DNA from: Paramoeba atlantica
Lineage: Eukaryota; Protista; Discosea
Direction: 5' to 3'
NCBI GenBank assembly: GCA_977017575.1
Contig: CDRNVI010000040.1
Coordinates: 372,001-436,000 of the forward strand
DNA length: 64,000 nucleotides
A program made the position numbers and the translations under genes. Shown piece after piece: positions 26,701 through 55,503 of this stretch. Each line of letters begins with the position of its first letter. Within the stretch, counting starts at the first letter, position 1. The notes beneath the pieces are model-generated. The model made no database searches. It was not told the DNA's origin and saw only the letters and a list, made by a program, of their open reading frames with translations.

Positions 26701-26733
26701 TAACGATAAAGATACAGTTTCTGTACCTTGTTG
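26701..26733 (+). other. Genomic spliced-leader (mini-exon)-like sequence not followed by an SL intron
   Basis: TAACGATAAAGATACAGTTTCTGTACCTTGTTG shares TAACG, the 16-mer GATACAGTTTCTGTAC and the terminal TTG with the kinetoplastid SL. It is followed by ATT, not a GT donor. Confidence 0.75.
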
Positions 26734-46397: not shown

Positions 46398-46734
46398 TGA
46401 GCAGAATTTCTTGCTTCATTATGTCGAATTGAAAGACACTATTTAAGAATAATGCAAGGGCGGTGCAGCTAAATCTGGGGGAGGTCTAAAATTTGTAAAT
46501 GTTGTTCAATTTTAGAAAATAATAGCGCATTCGAGAGCTCTCGCGAATCCCTCTGGTGGAAAGTGCGTCGTTTTCCACACCTTGCATAACGGGGATAAAA
46601 GGCCGAAAAAGTCAACTGCAAGCTTTTTTGCAAAGCCTACCTCAGAATAAGACCCTATGTTGGCGTACCTTTCCAGACGAAGCGCTCTACCACTGGTTTT
46701 GATCTGCTTAATGAATGGTAATGAGCCTTTAAAG

Positions 46735-49700
46735 CAGGGGTCCCTAAAACTTTGTAAACCCCCCACAGCGAAAAGTCACCCCCCTCTAACTTTTCAGCCA
46801 AGTGTCCGTTTGAGCTCATTCTTGTTGCATTTTGATGTTCCCAACATACTTTGCGCATTATAGCATGGAACCAAGGCTCTCAAATGCGTGCATCCGATAG
46901 ATGGATTATCACTTTCTTCACATTTTTCAAGAGACCAATTTCTCACACTTTAACAAAATAAATCTTCTCTTCCCATGAGAAATTCAATTATTTTTGTCCA
47001 TTTTTGCTGATTTTTGTTGCGAACGAGAGATCTCGTTCTCCTAGCAAAGATCTTTGCCGCTATTTTTTAATATTGACCCACTTGTGCCCCCTGGCCGCGG
47101 AGTGTTTGTTTTCTTAAATTAGTGTGGTATGACGATGCAAAAAAATAGATCCTAAAAGCAATTTTCTTTTTCATTTTCTAAAATGATCTAAAAATGGTGG
47201 GAACGTGTAGATCTCAGAATTTTGAACGAGAAAATGATATTTTAACCCCCTTAGGCCCCTTCAAGCAAAAAGTAAAGGAGACAGCTTAAAAACGTTGATT
47301 TATCACCGTTTCAAGAAAGCACCAATCAAATACAAATATTCCACCACGTGACAAATTGAATGTTTGTTATCTGTTTTTGATCATTTTTGTTGCAATCGAG
47401 AGATCTCGATCCCCTAGCGAAGATCTGTGACACCATTTTCATGTTGACCCCCTTCTCCCCCCCTGGTCGAGGAACATGAGATTTTTCGGGTAATATTGGC
47501 ATGACTATGTAAAAACGTCATTAAAAAAATGAGTTTAAATTTCTTATCTGTGAAGAGGTCTAAAAACAGCGGGAACGTGCAGATCTCAAAATTTTGAACG
47601 AAAAAGTTGTGCCGCAACCCCCCTAAGCCTCGTTGTACAAAAAAAAGAGGGGGGTGACTTATTCGCTGTGGGCGGTTTATATATAGTTTATAGTATTTCA
47701 AAAAAAAATTATAGTACTATAAATGACATTTATAGTACTATAAATACTTTAAAGTGTTTGAAAAACTTTATTTATTTTCCTACTCTTCTCCCCCCGTGTA
47801 TAAATGCGGTGATTATGACAAGTACACATTAAGCACTTGCGCTTCTGTCTAGCATGCGTTTGACAATACGTTATAAAAAAAATAGCGCGCAATAAAAAGT
47901 GGAAAGAAATCAAAACATGTAAATATACATACAATGCATATTTAACAATGGGAAAAAACAAGGCGAATGGGAAGAACCGGCGGAAAAAACCCACGTATGT
48001 ATCGTTTAAAAAAGCCCATGATGAATCGTATCTTCCAATCCAATAACATCTTTCGAATTCAACATAAGATCATTCCTGATACGAAACAACGGTGAAATTG
48101 CCATAAATGGATGCGACTACCAGAGAAACCTGCCGCGAATTGGAAGATCGACTTTCTGTGCATTTTATTTCCTTTAATTGATTGTTGCCGTAGCGAACAA
48201 CTCTGGCATTGTAATATGTCGTGCCGTTATGACGTACACAAAATGGGCGATTTGTCAAGGCCATGTGGGCGCACATGTCTCCTGCGTCGTAGAGTGATTC
48301 GATCTGTTCAACTTCGCTTGAGGACATACAATCGTTTAATAAAAGAGAAAAGAACGGGCAGCCAGTATTATCCCCAGTTTCACCGGTTTCGACTTTCGAT
48401 ATACCGATCGTAGGTTTAACCCGACATCGTATGGCTGATTCTGCTTCAACCAAGTCTTGCTTCAGGCGAGCCCGCAGATCACTATGGATAAAAGACGTCG
48501 AACTGAAAACTCGTTCACACGCAGCTTCAGAGGCGGATGCTACAGCAACCTTTTGAGCAGCATGTGCCAGGTGAGGCACTTTGTCCACAACAACAGAGTC
48601 CCCCCAAAATCCGGCGAAAGCACTTTTTCCTTGAGCACTGCGAACCATAGCACGTTCATCCAATAAACAACTATCCAAGAACCAACTATTAAATTCGGAC
48701 CAAATACTACTGTGCGTCACACTTGGCATATCGGAACTGAGCGAGAGAACGAGTGGCACACAAGTCTCACGAAGACGTTTTTTAATCGAAGTAGATATTG
48801 TCCCCCACTTCACTGCAGGCGACAGAACTCCGCAAAGGAAATGCGCGGACGACATCACGCGAATAAGACGATCATTCAAGTGAACTTTGTGACCTTCTTC
48901 TGCTTTGGCTGTGAGAGCTAACCATAGTCGGAGCGCAGCGCTAATAGTACAGTCGTTTCTTTCTAACAGCCGACCCACGACCTGGTACATTTCAAACCGT
49001 TTGACCCACTCCTGCAAGATACTTTTTTGGGTGTAATCATTCCAGTTGGAACATTTTATTGCTTGCTGCACTTCATTTAGCGAGGACCACCACCTAGTGG
49101 GTACTGGAGCTCGAAACGTAAGACAACGAGAAGCTAATTCGAGGATATCATCTTTTTTTTCTAGAGTCAAGACTTGCTCCATTACCAATTGCAATGCGTG
49201 AGCCGCGCATATGCTCCCAATCATGTTGCCTGCTTTCGTAAACTCCCGCACGGCTTTTTTGATCGCAGAACCAGCGTCGGATACGATGTGCACCACAGTA
49301 ACATGCATTTGCTTCAGCTCGGACACTACGGTACCAAGGAGCGCGTTATATGCACTTGCAGTACAGCCATCAACCATTTCTACTACGTTCCATGTAAAAG
49401 CCTGCCCATCGTGCAAAATGCATATGGCAGACGTAGTTCTTCCATGAATCGTACCCGAGTCCATAGCCATGCTAACAAAACTGCCACACACGTGAGCACA
49501 GATTTCCAACCGCAACTTATCCTTCAGATCAATGAGTAAGTTGTTAATCGTACTTTCCCCAGGGACGCAGCGCAGTCCCTTTGTAAGAAGCCACTTAAGG
49601 TTTGGGTCTTGCAAAGCAGCATTGCTAACCCCATGATCGCTTTTCCAAAGGAGGAGTCGCTCAAATTCCTGTAATTGTGGTCTCAGGGTGAAGGCATCCA

Positions 49701-50077
49701 AAGATCCTTGTTCCACACGTTTTTGGCGCTGAGTGCTTTGTAACCACTCCTCAAAATTTAGGTTATGACTTTTTTTCAAGTGCGTGAGTGCCGAAGAGTA
49801 GGAGACATGAATCCCCTTTTCGCAAAAAAAGGTTCTTTTCGCGCCTACTTCGCAGACTTGGCATTCGAAATTGTTCGTATCACCAATTTTAACAAAGTGT
49901 GAAGCAACAAATTCCGCCTGGCTTTCGTCGTTCCGTCGCTTATTTGGCATTTCTGAGAACAAAAAAAATAAGGTTTTATATACAGGTTTTGTACATAAGG
50001 TTTTGTATATAGTATTTAAAAGTTTATAGTACTATAAAAGTACTATAATTAAGTTTTTAAAGTTTTAGGGACCCCTG
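46735..50077 (-). mobile_element. Full-length hAT DNA transposon
   Basis: 19-bp perfect TIR CAGGGGTCCCTAAAACTTT at 46735-46753 and 50059-50077. 8-bp flanks CTTTAAAG (46727-46734) and CTTTTAAG (50078-50085). Encloses an intact transposase. Confidence 0.93.
48070..49950 (-). CDS. hAT transposase (BED zinc finger, DDE catalytic core, dimerisation domain)
   Basis: CQVC...HLKKSH BED finger, MAMDSGT, VSDAGS, CAAH, TRWWSS and SEAACERVFS. ATG at 49950 (ORF track starts at TTG 49962). Confidence 0.92.
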   Translation of the reverse strand: MPNKRRNDESQAEFVASHFVKIGDTNNFECQVCEVGAKRTFFCEKGIHVSYSSALTHLKKSHNLNFEEWLQSTQRQKRVEQGSLDAFTLRPQLQEFERLLLWKSDHGVSNAALQDPNLKWLLTKGLRCVPGESTINNLLIDLKDKLRLEICAHVCGSFVSMAMDSGTIHGRTTSAICILHDGQAFTWNVVEMVDGCTASAYNALLGTVVSELKQMHVTVVHIVSDAGSAIKKAVREFTKAGNMIGSICAAHALQLVMEQVLTLEKKDDILELASRCLTFRAPVPTRWWSSLNEVQQAIKCSNWNDYTQKSILQEWVKRFEMYQVVGRLLERNDCTISAALRLWLALTAKAEEGHKVHLNDRLIRVMSSAHFLCGVLSPAVKWGTISTSIKKRLRETCVPLVLSLSSDMPSVTHSSIWSEFNSWFLDSCLLDERAMVRSAQGKSAFAGFWGDSVVVDKVPHLAHAAQKVAVASASEAACERVFSSTSFIHSDLRARLKQDLVEAESAIRCRVKPTIGISKVETGETGDNTGCPFFSLLLNDCMSSSEVEQIESLYDAGDMCAHMALTNRPFCVRHNGTTYYNARVVRYGNNQLKEIKCTESRSSNSRQVSLVVASIYGNFTVVSYQE

Positions 50078-50989
50078 CTTTTAAGAAACTTCCTGGTGAA
50101 TGCACTCATCTTTCATTCACGGATAATGAAAAAACGTAAAATAACATGCCAAAATTACAAAAATAATGCAACAAAGGCCTTTTTCAAGCTCTTTTTTCGT
50201 ATTTTCGCCTTAAAAAAAAATAAAACTCAAAACGGCTGGAAACGACGTATTTTCCACCACAGGGGTTCGAGGGAGCTCCCGAATGCGCTATTATTTTCTA
50301 AAATTGGCTAAGTTCTACGAATTTTAGACCCCCCCAGATTTAGCTGCATCCCCTGTATACAGTGGTTTCAAGATATCTTTCCCCTCGCGGAATTTTGAGT
50401 TTTTTTATCGATTTTTTTCTCATTTTTGCAGCAGTGGATAGATCTCATTTCCCTGGTGAAGAGCTTTGCTGTCCTTTTTTTGTAGGAACCCCCTGGGTCT
50501 AAAACACGTGGTTTTGTGGGGTCATTTTTATGGAACATATCCATTCTTTTCTCCATTCTTTATGTTTTTTTATGCTTTGTCAAAATATTTTCTCTCGCAT
50601 TATGGCTTGTTTTCATTGTGCTTTCATTGTGTGTAGATCTCGTTCCTCTAGCAAGGCCTTTGCTATTTTCTCTTACTAGTGATCCCCTAGTGCTCTCGTG
50701 AGATAAAAAACTTGATTACAACCACAAATCCCTTATGGAGATCATAAAAAAAGTTTTAAGACCTTAAAAAGATCCTCTCATAAACAAAAGGCTATGAACT
50801 CAATTACAGTGAAGTATTCAAAAAAGGGGGGCCACCGCCAATGCGGCACTATTCTGCCGATCGCAGTGATTTCGTCCATTGGAGGCGTAGTTAATTTCGG
50901 AACCGGCCCCACGCCGCGAAGCGGCACGCTTTTTTTGTGTAAAAAGCTTTTTGTGCTCTGGTGGTTAAATAGCAACGGTTACTAGCGGC

Positions 50990-54000: not shown

Positions 54001-54101
54001 TTAGTCTCTTCGTTAAACGCGGTGGTAGTCTTCAACGCGAAGTGCACAGCATGAGTGACTTCTAAGTTGAAAACAACCACCGCGTTTAACGAAGAGACTA
54101 A
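54001..54101. repeat. Long inverted repeat / possible TA-flanked mini-MITE
   Basis: TTAGTCTCTTCGTTAAACGCGGTGGT (54001-54026) is perfectly inverted at 54076-54101 and extends inward with two mismatches. Confidence 0.9.
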
Positions 54102-54192: not shown

Positions 54193-55503
54193 ATGTATCG
54201 AAGAATATCAGTGAGTCACTTTCGACGTCAAAGCGTAGAGCGGTGTTCGATTCTACAGGATAGCGTGAGAGAAACTGTGTATTACCCGGCATGCGATCCC
54301 CCAAGTTACACACCTCTTACTCCTCTTCAACATTTGTTGGACCCCTCGAAATTCGCATGGTACAATGCCGTACCGGCTTGTTATAAAATTCTTCCTGAGA
54401 TTTCCAATGCAAAAGATGCTTTTATGCACCGTAAATGGGTGCAGTGTGATATCTCCTTGGAGGCCTCGCTGAGAATTATGGAAGGAGTCTTGAACCGTCA
54501 AGGCGTTACTGTGACGGCGCTTTGCCTGGGACGCCTACTTACCGCGATGCATCGGCAGCTACACAACGTTCAACCAGAGAGGTGGATATCATTGTGTTGT
54601 GAAATTTTCGAACGCTTGGAGCTTTTTGACGTGGTAAACAGTGCTGATTTTTTTCAAGCGACACCCTTCCTAAAACCTTTACTTGCGATAGCTCTTTTGG
54701 TACCAGGCGTCGTTTTCTCTTCTTACATGCAAGACTGCATTAAAAAAATATCTTCAAAGCCTGTTGATTATAAAAACGAAGTCGAGAAACCCTTTGAGTT
54801 CTACTTAGCTCTCAATCATCCTCATCAGAATATCAAGAGTACAGTGCTGAAGTTACAAGGACACAACGATGACGCCTCGAAATCGGGAACAGACGGAGCC
54901 GATGCCCTTCTACACATAAATCCGTTGCACGTGTGTGGCGTTTTACTGGAAGAACTAAATGTTAATAACTCAATACGAATGATTTGGCAACCGCAATCTC
55001 TATCGGCAGAGCAGAATATGATTTTGAGATTGCTACATTCTTGGATCCATAGATTGTATACTTCTGCAGAAAAAAACACTTTAAAGTGCACTTCTGGAGA
55101 ATATATTACCATTTGCCTCTCCGTACCAAAGTGTCCCCTTGAAATTCTCCAGCACGCGCTTAAATTATCAAAAGGTATGATGCCCCCTTGCAATTCGAAT
55201 ACAACGTGCTCAGGATCAGGGTTGCGTCATACTGATTCGGATCCGCATGCTCATCTCTTGTTAACATCATTGTGCTTGCGCAGGCTTGCATATCATTATC
55301 AATTTAACTATGTATATCTCACCGGATTATTCACTACTTCGGCTTCGCACCTAGAAAAGTGGGTAGCAAACGTGCCGAATTTATGTACAGAGGAAAGAAA
55401 CAATTTTGTGAATCATGTAGTTAGAAGACATCACATCAGACTACTCGAGGAACTTGGCCAAGAAAAAGAAGCTCAGGCCTTGAAGCGAAAATACAACTTG
55501 TGA
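54193..55503 (+). CDS. Hypothetical helical protein, possibly mitochondrial
   Basis: 436-aa ATG-started ORF with Arg/Ser-rich N-terminus. Confidence 0.65.
   Translation: MYRRISVSHFRRQSVERCSILQDSVRETVYYPACDPPSYTPLTPLQHLLDPSKFAWYNAVPACYKILPEISNAKDAFMHRKWVQCDISLEASLRIMEGVLNRQGVTVTALCLGRLLTAMHRQLHNVQPERWISLCCEIFERLELFDVVNSADFFQATPFLKPLLAIALLVPGVVFSSYMQDCIKKISSKPVDYKNEVEKPFEFYLALNHPHQNIKSTVLKLQGHNDDASKSGTDGADALLHINPLHVCGVLLEELNVNNSIRMIWQPQSLSAEQNMILRLLHSWIHRLYTSAEKNTLKCTSGEYITICLSVPKCPLEILQHALKLSKGMMPPCNSNTTCSGSGLRHTDSDPHAHLLLTSLCLRRLAYHYQFNYVYLTGLFTTSASHLEKWVANVPNLCTEERNNFVNHVVRRHHIRLLEELGQEKEAQALKRKYNL

Follow-up and report, generated by a model that had tools for sequence, protein, structure and literature searches.

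A hAT transposon with an intact transposase gene in a kinetoplastid-type genome, and probable recent movement within its family

Structure of the element and its insertion site

We analyzed a window of 64,000 nucleotides (G000:C40:372001-436000) from an assembly of 45.7 Mb in 248 contigs, deposited for Paramoeba atlantica (GCA_977017575.1). Positions without a contig name are those of the window, and contigs are named C with a number. Between positions 46735 and 50077 lies a transposon with inverted ends and one long uninterrupted gene, which encodes a transposase (Table 1). It belongs to the hAT superfamily, as indicated by its sequence motifs, its Pfam match, its Hermes-like fold, its terminal inverted repeats (TIRs), and its 8-bp target-site duplication. 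We consider it quite probable that this element is an autonomous-type hAT of an old resident lineage and the likeliest source of the enzyme for derivatives that moved recently. The window copy itself is not pristine or newly inserted, while its family appears to have moved very recently.

An earlier note on this DNA, made from the sequence of the window, had described a 3,343-bp element with perfect 19-bp TIRs, and both ends were found where it placed them. The ends are short, begin with CAGGG, and are of the YARNG type, which is the consensus of hAT TIRs. The note had also proposed a genome search for the TIR. The 19-mer has 17 perfect copies genome-wide, and 100 matches were found at three mismatches or fewer versus 1 for the reversed control; thus, the ends are not a chance repeat. 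The 8-bp duplication with one mismatch was likewise confirmed, as the two sides agree at seven of eight positions and paralogous empty sites hold the target once.

These empty sites were found in an older miniature inverted-repeat transposable element (MITE), which the hAT insertion has split into two halves. Four uninterrupted paralogues of this MITE (C41:166740-167286, C36:68093-68639, C9:63119-63640, and C4:656855-657378) are 80-90% identical to it. The matches to the left and right flanks overlap by exactly 8 bp in all four, and three of them read ...gagc CTTTTAAG aaac... a single time. Because the MITE paralogues show the target once, the hAT landed in CTTTTAAG and duplicated 8 bp. Since this was the ancestral target, the TA in the middle of the left duplication arose by mutation (T>A) after insertion. 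An outer inverted repeat (46459-46573 and 50240-50353, in pieces of 96 and 23 nt) corresponds to the arms of the older MITE. The 96-nt piece was considered as a part of the hAT and was rejected on the evidence of the uninterrupted paralogues. Adjoining the split MITE is a repeat of about 140 bp (50356-50499), which occurs on dozens of contigs at 84-92% identity, often in inverted pairs about 100-250 bp apart, and represents another MITE family.

The element had been called structurally complete, which is not supported for the window copy, as a foreign MITE flanked by TA lies 2 bp inside its left 19-bp end. This MITE has a duplication inside it, at a period of 373 bp. At least 40 other genomic copies were found with 94-96% identity, the ends are always AACCCCCCACAGCG..., and TA is found on both sides in at least 25 copies. 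Every other hAT copy examined (C56, C58, and others) is without it. Because this stretch is multi-copy, is flanked by TA, and is absent from the other hAT copies, it is not hAT sequence, and the hAT proper is 2,420 bp without it. Judging from the TA/TA duplication, it is probably a Tc1/mariner-type MITE. Its presence probably weakens the mobility of the window copy in cis.

Three subterminal palindromes of 16 bp were found in the hAT proper, two on the left and one on the right. The C58 and C56 copies carry the three at matching positions, and these palindromes are candidate transposase-binding sites.

Table 1. Features of the hAT element in the window and other copies of its family
Feature	Location	Strand	Remarks
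Left TIR, 19 bp	46735-46753	+	CAGGGGTCCCTAAAACTTT
Right TIR, 19 bp	50059-50077	-	Exact reverse complement of the left CAGGGGTCCCTAAAACTTT
Left target-site duplication, 8 bp	46727-46734	.	CTTTAAAG, one T>A change from ancestral CTTTTAAG
Right target-site duplication, 8 bp	50078-50085	.	CTTTTAAG, ancestral state
Older MITE, left half	46459-46726	.	Whole MITE about 545 bp with inverted arms of about 115 bp; hAT inserted into it
Older MITE, right half	50086-50358	.	Separated from the left half by the hAT insertion
Nested foreign MITE, 921 bp	46757-47677	.	Non-coding; ends AACCCCCCACAGCG...; TA flanks at 46755-46756 and 47678-47679
Two left subterminal 16-bp palindromes	47708-47744	.	ATTATAGTACTATAAA and TTTATAGTACTATAAA; candidate transposase-binding sites
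Right subterminal 16-bp palindrome	50023-50038	.	TTTATAGTACTATAAA; third palindrome copy, near the right end
Transposase gene, 626 codons + TGA	48070-49950	-	ATG at 49950, TGA at 48070-48072; uninterrupted; only long open reading frame
Extra C-terminal domain, residues 544-626	48073-48321	-	Helix and five-stranded small barrel (model), beyond the Hermes-like part
Polypyrimidine tract + AG	49953-49973	-	2 nt before the ATG; candidate acceptor site for the spliced leader
Short derivative, 772 bp	C58		Perfect 8-bp duplication CTTTAAAC
Shorter copy, 1,900 bp	C59		Perfect 8-bp duplication GGTAAAAG
Shorter copy	C2/C12, allelic pair		Perfect 8-bp duplication AAATTAAC
Shorter copy	C19/C43, allelic pair		Perfect 8-bp duplication GTAAAAAC
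Shorter copy, 907 bp	C65		Perfect 8-bp duplication AATATAAC
Second full-length locus	C56		Perfect duplication AAAGAAAA; left end with 1 mismatch, right end 5 bp short

Host chromosome and residency of the element

The + strand carries 25 of the 30 open reading frames of at least 200 amino acids in the window. Of the other five, one is the transposase and four overlap frames of the + strand. The genes form a same-strand, intron-poor array that includes RtcB, beta'-COP, an AAA ATPase, Utp11, and others, and the hAT lies 340 bases downstream of Utp11 on a 1.05-Mb contig. Same-strand, intron-poor arrays together with a euglenozoan spliced-leader relic identify the host chromosome as a kinetoplastid-type nuclear genome. 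The spliced-leader-like sequence is CAGTTTCTGTACCTTGTTG at 26715-26733 in genomic DNA, with two mismatches to the 3' part of the kinetoplastid consensus.

Contig C39 is an allelic haplotig with 99.9% identity to the window across 6.3 kb, including the hAT and its flanks. The C39 allele and the window element differ only at 47221 and 48041, and their transposase proteins are identical. Because both the hAT insertion and the nested MITE are present in the C39 allele, they are older than the split of the haplotypes. The element had been called young, a description that fits neither an insertion shared by both haplotigs nor a duplication that matches at seven of eight positions.

An origin of the element from a co-assembled contaminant organism or a mis-assembled contig has a negligible probability, and no observation was found in its favor. 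The hAT is surrounded by the strand-coherent Utp11/RtcB/beta'-COP/AAA ATPase array of a megabase-sized contig, the insertion is shared by the allelic contig, and the split host MITE and the nested MITE are each found on dozens of contigs. Contamination is therefore rejected on the basis of the shared insertion and of the embedding of the element in genome-wide repeat families, and the hAT is a resident of this genome.

The transposase

The earlier note had predicted an uninterrupted transposase of about 626 amino acids with D-D-E residues, a CxxH motif, and the block SEAACERVFS, and all of these were found (D164, D225, C248-x2-H251, and E479 within SEAACERVFS), together with W287. In an alignment of 29 diverse relatives, D164, D225, C248, H251, Q254, W287, E479, R480, and F482 are invariant. 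The Pfam family Dimer_Tnp_hAT (PF05699) scored 22.7 bits against a cut-off of 21.4, with the hAT dimerisation region at residues 453-503, and two intact paralogues in this genome scored 28.7 and 27.3 bits. DUF659 scored under its Pfam cut-off. When a profile of four family members was compared with the PDB, Hermes alone was matched (E 8.6e-6), and SEAACERLFS aligned with SAASERTFS of Hermes. Therefore, E479 is at the position of the catalytic glutamate.

An AlphaFold model was built on the alignment of the 29 relatives (predicted local distance difference test score, pLDDT, 86; predicted template modeling score, pTM, 0.79). The best PDB matches of the model are all Hermes (Foldseek E 2e-12; VIA-align Z 22, root-mean-square deviation 4.2 Å over 367 residues, model residues 123-515). 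Retroviral integrase cores come next with Z 11, and they align only to the two halves of the split core, at residues ~157-265 and ~470-515. As modeled, the RNase-H-like core is split by an alpha-helical insertion domain, which is the hallmark architecture of hAT transposases.

The note had also proposed a BED finger. The residue pattern is present (C30-x2-C33-x23-H57-x4-H62, residues 30-62, with C33, H57, and H62 nearly invariant), and the model folds it into a beta-beta-alpha unit, but Pfam zf-BED gave no score on the transposase even at E up to 1. At the other end, the protein has an extension beyond the Hermes-like part, which is conserved in the 41% paralogue described below and is specific to the clade. 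This domain had no significant Pfam match. When it was folded alone (pLDDT 67), a PDB structure search returned no significant match and only weak Sm-, SH3-, and WYL-like rows.

The polypyrimidine tract and AG directly before the ATG are consistent with an adaptation to spliced-leader trans-splicing. A similar layout is found at the ATG of the 33% paralogue (L036) and not at that of the 41% paralogue (L034).

Other copies and probable recent movement of the family

At least seven loci of the family have 8-bp duplications, and those at C58, C59, C2/C12, C19/C43, C65, and C56 are perfect (Table 1). The second full-length locus, C56, has a dead transposase gene, broken by a stop at codon 94 and by deletions of 4 bp and 3 bp. 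Between the window gene and the C56 gene, synonymous divergence (dS) is 0.029 and the ratio of nonsynonymous to synonymous divergence (dN/dS) is 0.69. No empty allele of the C56 copy was found, and its flanks are single-copy in the assembly. The C56 copy also has an insert of about 128 bp upstream of the ATG (L003 1379-1508 = G000:C56:336462-336591), which matches the inverted arms of another MITE family of about 750 bp with dozens of copies. Other repeats have rearranged the C26 region allelic to the C59 locus too heavily for presence or absence to be called there.

The 772-bp derivative on C58 has ends identical to those of the window element (19/19) and the same three subterminal palindromes in the same positions. 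Its flanks were located on the allelic contig C10, the left at C10:65925-67424 (100%) and the right at C10:67417-68904 (95%). These two blocks overlap by exactly 8 bp, which corresponds to an empty site with a single target. This arrangement suggests that the 772-bp member was inserted at the C58/C10 locus after the haplotypes diverged, which is likelier than its footprint-free excision from C10, an event less likely for a hAT. The earlier suggestion that the element is possibly active thus gains support from a same-ended derivative that appears to be present on one allelic contig and absent from the other. The window locus, with its allele, holds the only intact transposase gene of the family in the assembly, and therefore it is the likeliest source of the enzyme.

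If the enzyme works as Hermes does, its binding sites would be the 19-bp ends and the subterminal 16-bp palindromes, hairpins would form on the flanking DNA during excision, and an 8-bp stagger between the cuts would accompany reinsertion of the element. The window copy entered the older MITE, with CTTTTAAG as its target, at a time when the two assembled haplotypes had not yet separated, and the 921-bp MITE landed 2 bp inside the left end later. The transposase of the window gene may then have recently moved short derivatives with the same ends in trans, one of which is still on only one of two allelic contigs.

A number of observations weigh against such a role of the window locus. The insertion predates the haplotype split, its duplication is imperfect at one of eight positions through one mutation, and the nested MITE parts the left end from its subterminal motifs by 0.9 kb. 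The dN/dS of 0.69 rests on few changes relative to the dead C56 gene and does not indicate functional selection, and with a divergence of roughly 1.5% per copy, an intact frame could by a rough estimate persist through luck. The gene runs against the direction of the gene array around it, and the transposase is known here from its gene sequence. Moreover, the C10 empty site was located from BLAST coordinates. Another possible mover of the C58 derivative is the enzyme of a related family, or a copy that the assembly lacks, and related intact hATs with similar ends are present, such as the 41% paralogue on C37 with CAGGGGTCCGAATAACTTT. Many of these points would be explained if the window element were a fossil with a lucky open frame, immobile itself and with a nonfunctional or unexpressed protein, while another transposase moved the derivatives. 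We regard this explanation as unlikely, though it deserves consideration. Every catalytic and structural residue that does not vary among the 29 relatives is retained in the protein, and both 19-bp ends are perfect. Furthermore, the polymorphic C58 derivative shares all 19 terminal positions and the three palindromes with the window element, whereas at least 3 of the 19 positions are different in related families.

The gene might also have been domesticated, that is, kept for a cellular function of the host with the ends as relics. An intact frame at a fixed locus, with an identical protein in both haplotypes, would fit such a function, and so would the possible trans-splice acceptor at the ATG and the extra C-terminal domain. 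However, the ends are perfect and derivatives with the same ends seem to have been mobile recently, the catalytic triad and W287 are retained, and the gene is located within another transposon, in a spacer filled with transposons and antisense to the gene array. Domestication is thus very improbable.

Relatives and origin of the lineage

Many further hAT-like genes and fragments are found in this genome, with 26-41% identity to the window transposase. Intact paralogues are located on C37 (41%, with the ends CAGGGGTCCGAATAACTTT) and on C48/C79 (33%). Sister families of ends also occur genome-wide, namely CAGAGGTCCCTAAAACTAT (about 20 matches), CAGGGGTCCGAATAACTTT (about 17), CAGGGGTCCGAAAAACTTC/T, and CAGGGGTGCCGAAAACTTG, and the 41% paralogue with CAGGGGTCCGAATAACTTT at its ends, which is intact, lies at C37:320600-322486. 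All of them share CAGGGGTCC and represent a radiation of hAT families in this genome.

Outside this genome, relatives are distant. A word-index protein search returned only a fragment with 95% identity, which is a C56-type copy in an ENA assembly, and an environmental protein with 26%. A HMMER scan of 1.84 billion protein representatives returned 114 proteins at E ≤1e-3. The matches with more than 40% identity are all fragments; P0001 and P0003 fit the broken C56 gene on either side of the codon-94 stop, and P0004-P0006 resemble paralogue fragments of this genome. These matches appear to be the organism's own copies. Among the representatives scanned, no outside full-length protein exceeded 29% identity, and the best full-length outsiders have 24-29%. 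The nearest of them is P0007 (PhM_4_TR8466, EukProt EP00760_Papus_ankaliazontas_P037417), a transcript of 628 amino acids from Papus ankaliazontas with 26-28% identity (E 5.6e-29), and its best matches in this genome are exactly the hAT clade of the window element. Papus is a prokinetoplastid whose culture also held the kinetoplastid prey Procryptobia sorokini (PMC7859406), and the transcript could belong to Papus or to this prey. The genome paper of Papus does not mention transposons (PMC7859406). A transcript of Colponema vietnamica and a few environmental sequences are among the relatives further out. Of 20 relatives whose clusters were checked for names, those of Papus ankaliazontas and Colponema vietnamica alone carried one.

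A maximum-likelihood tree was built with the lineages of this genome, the Papus sequence, and unnamed relatives. The three lineages with intact genes in this genome group as one clade with a Shimodaira-Hasegawa-like approximate likelihood ratio test (SH-aLRT) support of 99, within a looser group (91) that contains the Papus sequence and unnamed environmental proteins. Because the hAT lineages of this genome are deeply diverged yet monophyletic, they indicate long residence and diversification in place. This fits a hAT lineage that is an old resident of this branch and not a recent import.

The earlier note had raised horizontal transfer from an amoebozoan or animal host. A recent arrival from an animal, amoebozoan, or viral donor would be in line with the lack of reported hATs in the searchable kinetoplastid literature and with the patchiness of the relatives, which include a few environmental sequences and the Colponema transcript further out. 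The other evidence points away from it. The lineages of this genome are 41%, 33%, or less identical and still form one clade, no full-length outsider exceeds 29%, and the closest named relative comes from a kinetoplastid culture. In addition, the derivatives of the family are 87-91% diverged internally, which argues for long residence. We therefore give a recent horizontal arrival very little weight, and an old resident lineage remains the preferred reading.

Target preference

In 2011, Arensburger et al. reportedly distinguished a Buster group with nnnTAnnn targets from an Ac type with nTnnnnAn targets. The earlier note had likened the element to the Buster/Charlie type by its CAGGGG start and a TA-centered site, and this suggestion was not borne out. 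The insertion used CTTTTAAG as its original target, and the target consensus over 38 non-redundant ends from this family and its sister families was S-T-T-n-A-A-A-S, so that a TA-centered preference was rejected. The strongest signals in the 38 ends are T at positions 2-3 and A at positions 5-7. T was found at position 4 in 34% and A at position 5 in 53%, while T at position 2 (61%) and A at position 7 (66%) were counted in an A+T-rich background without a control. The pattern thus appears closer to the Ac type than to the Buster type and is compatible with the former. No Buster-type Pfam model scored on the transposase, and the similarity of its core is to DUF659.

Elsewhere in the window, a 36-nt inverted repeat with 94% complementarity and a 29-nt loop lies at 54001-54101, about 90 bp upstream of an open reading frame that starts at 54193.

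Significance and comparison with known systems

To our knowledge, trypanosomatid genomes are the textbook example of eukaryotes without cut-and-paste transposons. The element described here belongs to a divergent, locally diversified hAT clade and probably extends living cut-and-paste transposons to kinetoplastids. An intact hAT gene with its ends, 8-bp duplications, and a sister copy that varies between haplotypes suggest that free-living kinetoplastids can carry rich, probably living DNA transposons, and the absence of such transposons from the parasites is reframed as a loss. We tentatively put forward a broader scenario, in which a kinetoplastid-specific hAT clade is ancient (shared with Prokinetoplastina or with bodonid prey), was lost in trypanosomatids, and is still active in a free-living kinetoplastid, with a new C-terminal barrel domain for targeting and expression through the spliced leader. 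If this is true, kinetoplastids would have yielded their first known working cut-and-paste system, from which a transposon tool for these organisms could naturally be developed. The family offers a dated and testable system with an enzyme, mini-elements, and candidate binding palindromes, and the native transposase could be tried for insertional mutagenesis in kinetoplastids.

Buster/Charlie hATs resemble the window element in ends that start with CAGGGG and in the 8-bp duplication, but their nnnTAnnn target is not seen here. The Papus protein P0007 is similar in length to the window transposase and likewise has a DUF659-like core and a hAT C-terminal region, but it is distant in sequence and is known as a transcript alone.

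Hermes of Musca domestica, a member of the Ac group whose transposase structure has been solved, carries short subterminal repeats. It shares with the window protein a DDE core split by a helical insertion and followed by the C-terminal hAT region (Z 22), the catalytic E in an S-x-A-x-x-E-R-x-F-S block, the CxxH motif, and the tryptophan within TRW(N/W)S. The 8-bp target duplication and the short YARNG-type inverted ends are also common to both elements. However, the two proteins have only 15-18% sequence identity, and the window protein has TRWWS in place of TRWNS and an extra barrel-like C-terminal domain of about 85 amino acids. The window element also differs in its subterminal 16-bp palindromes, in its trans-splicing protist host, and in the polypyrimidine-AG tract at the ATG.

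We found no hAT in the searchable literature on kinetoplastids, bodonids, and prokinetoplastids, where Merlin is the only DNA transposon reported for kinetoplastids. The note had named Merlin as the class II family of Bodo and Perkinsela, in agreement with this literature (PMC8101967). The genome of Bodo saltans was reported to contain ingi, SLACS/CZAR, VIPER, and TATE only (PMC4728078), and the Diplonema genome paper lists TATE-, MULE-, and Helitron-like open reading frames. Merlin was reported in 2021 as the first DNA transposon in kinetoplastids and was judged inactive; no ends or duplications were found (PMC8101967). The Merlin sequences of Bodo saltans and Perkinsela are similar to the window hAT in being DDE cut-and-paste sequences in kinetoplastids other than trypanosomatids. 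However, they belong to another superfamily (IS1595-like), lack inverted ends and duplications, and are judged immobile (PMC8101967), whereas the window hAT has ends, duplications, an intact gene, and a probable polymorphic insertion in its family.

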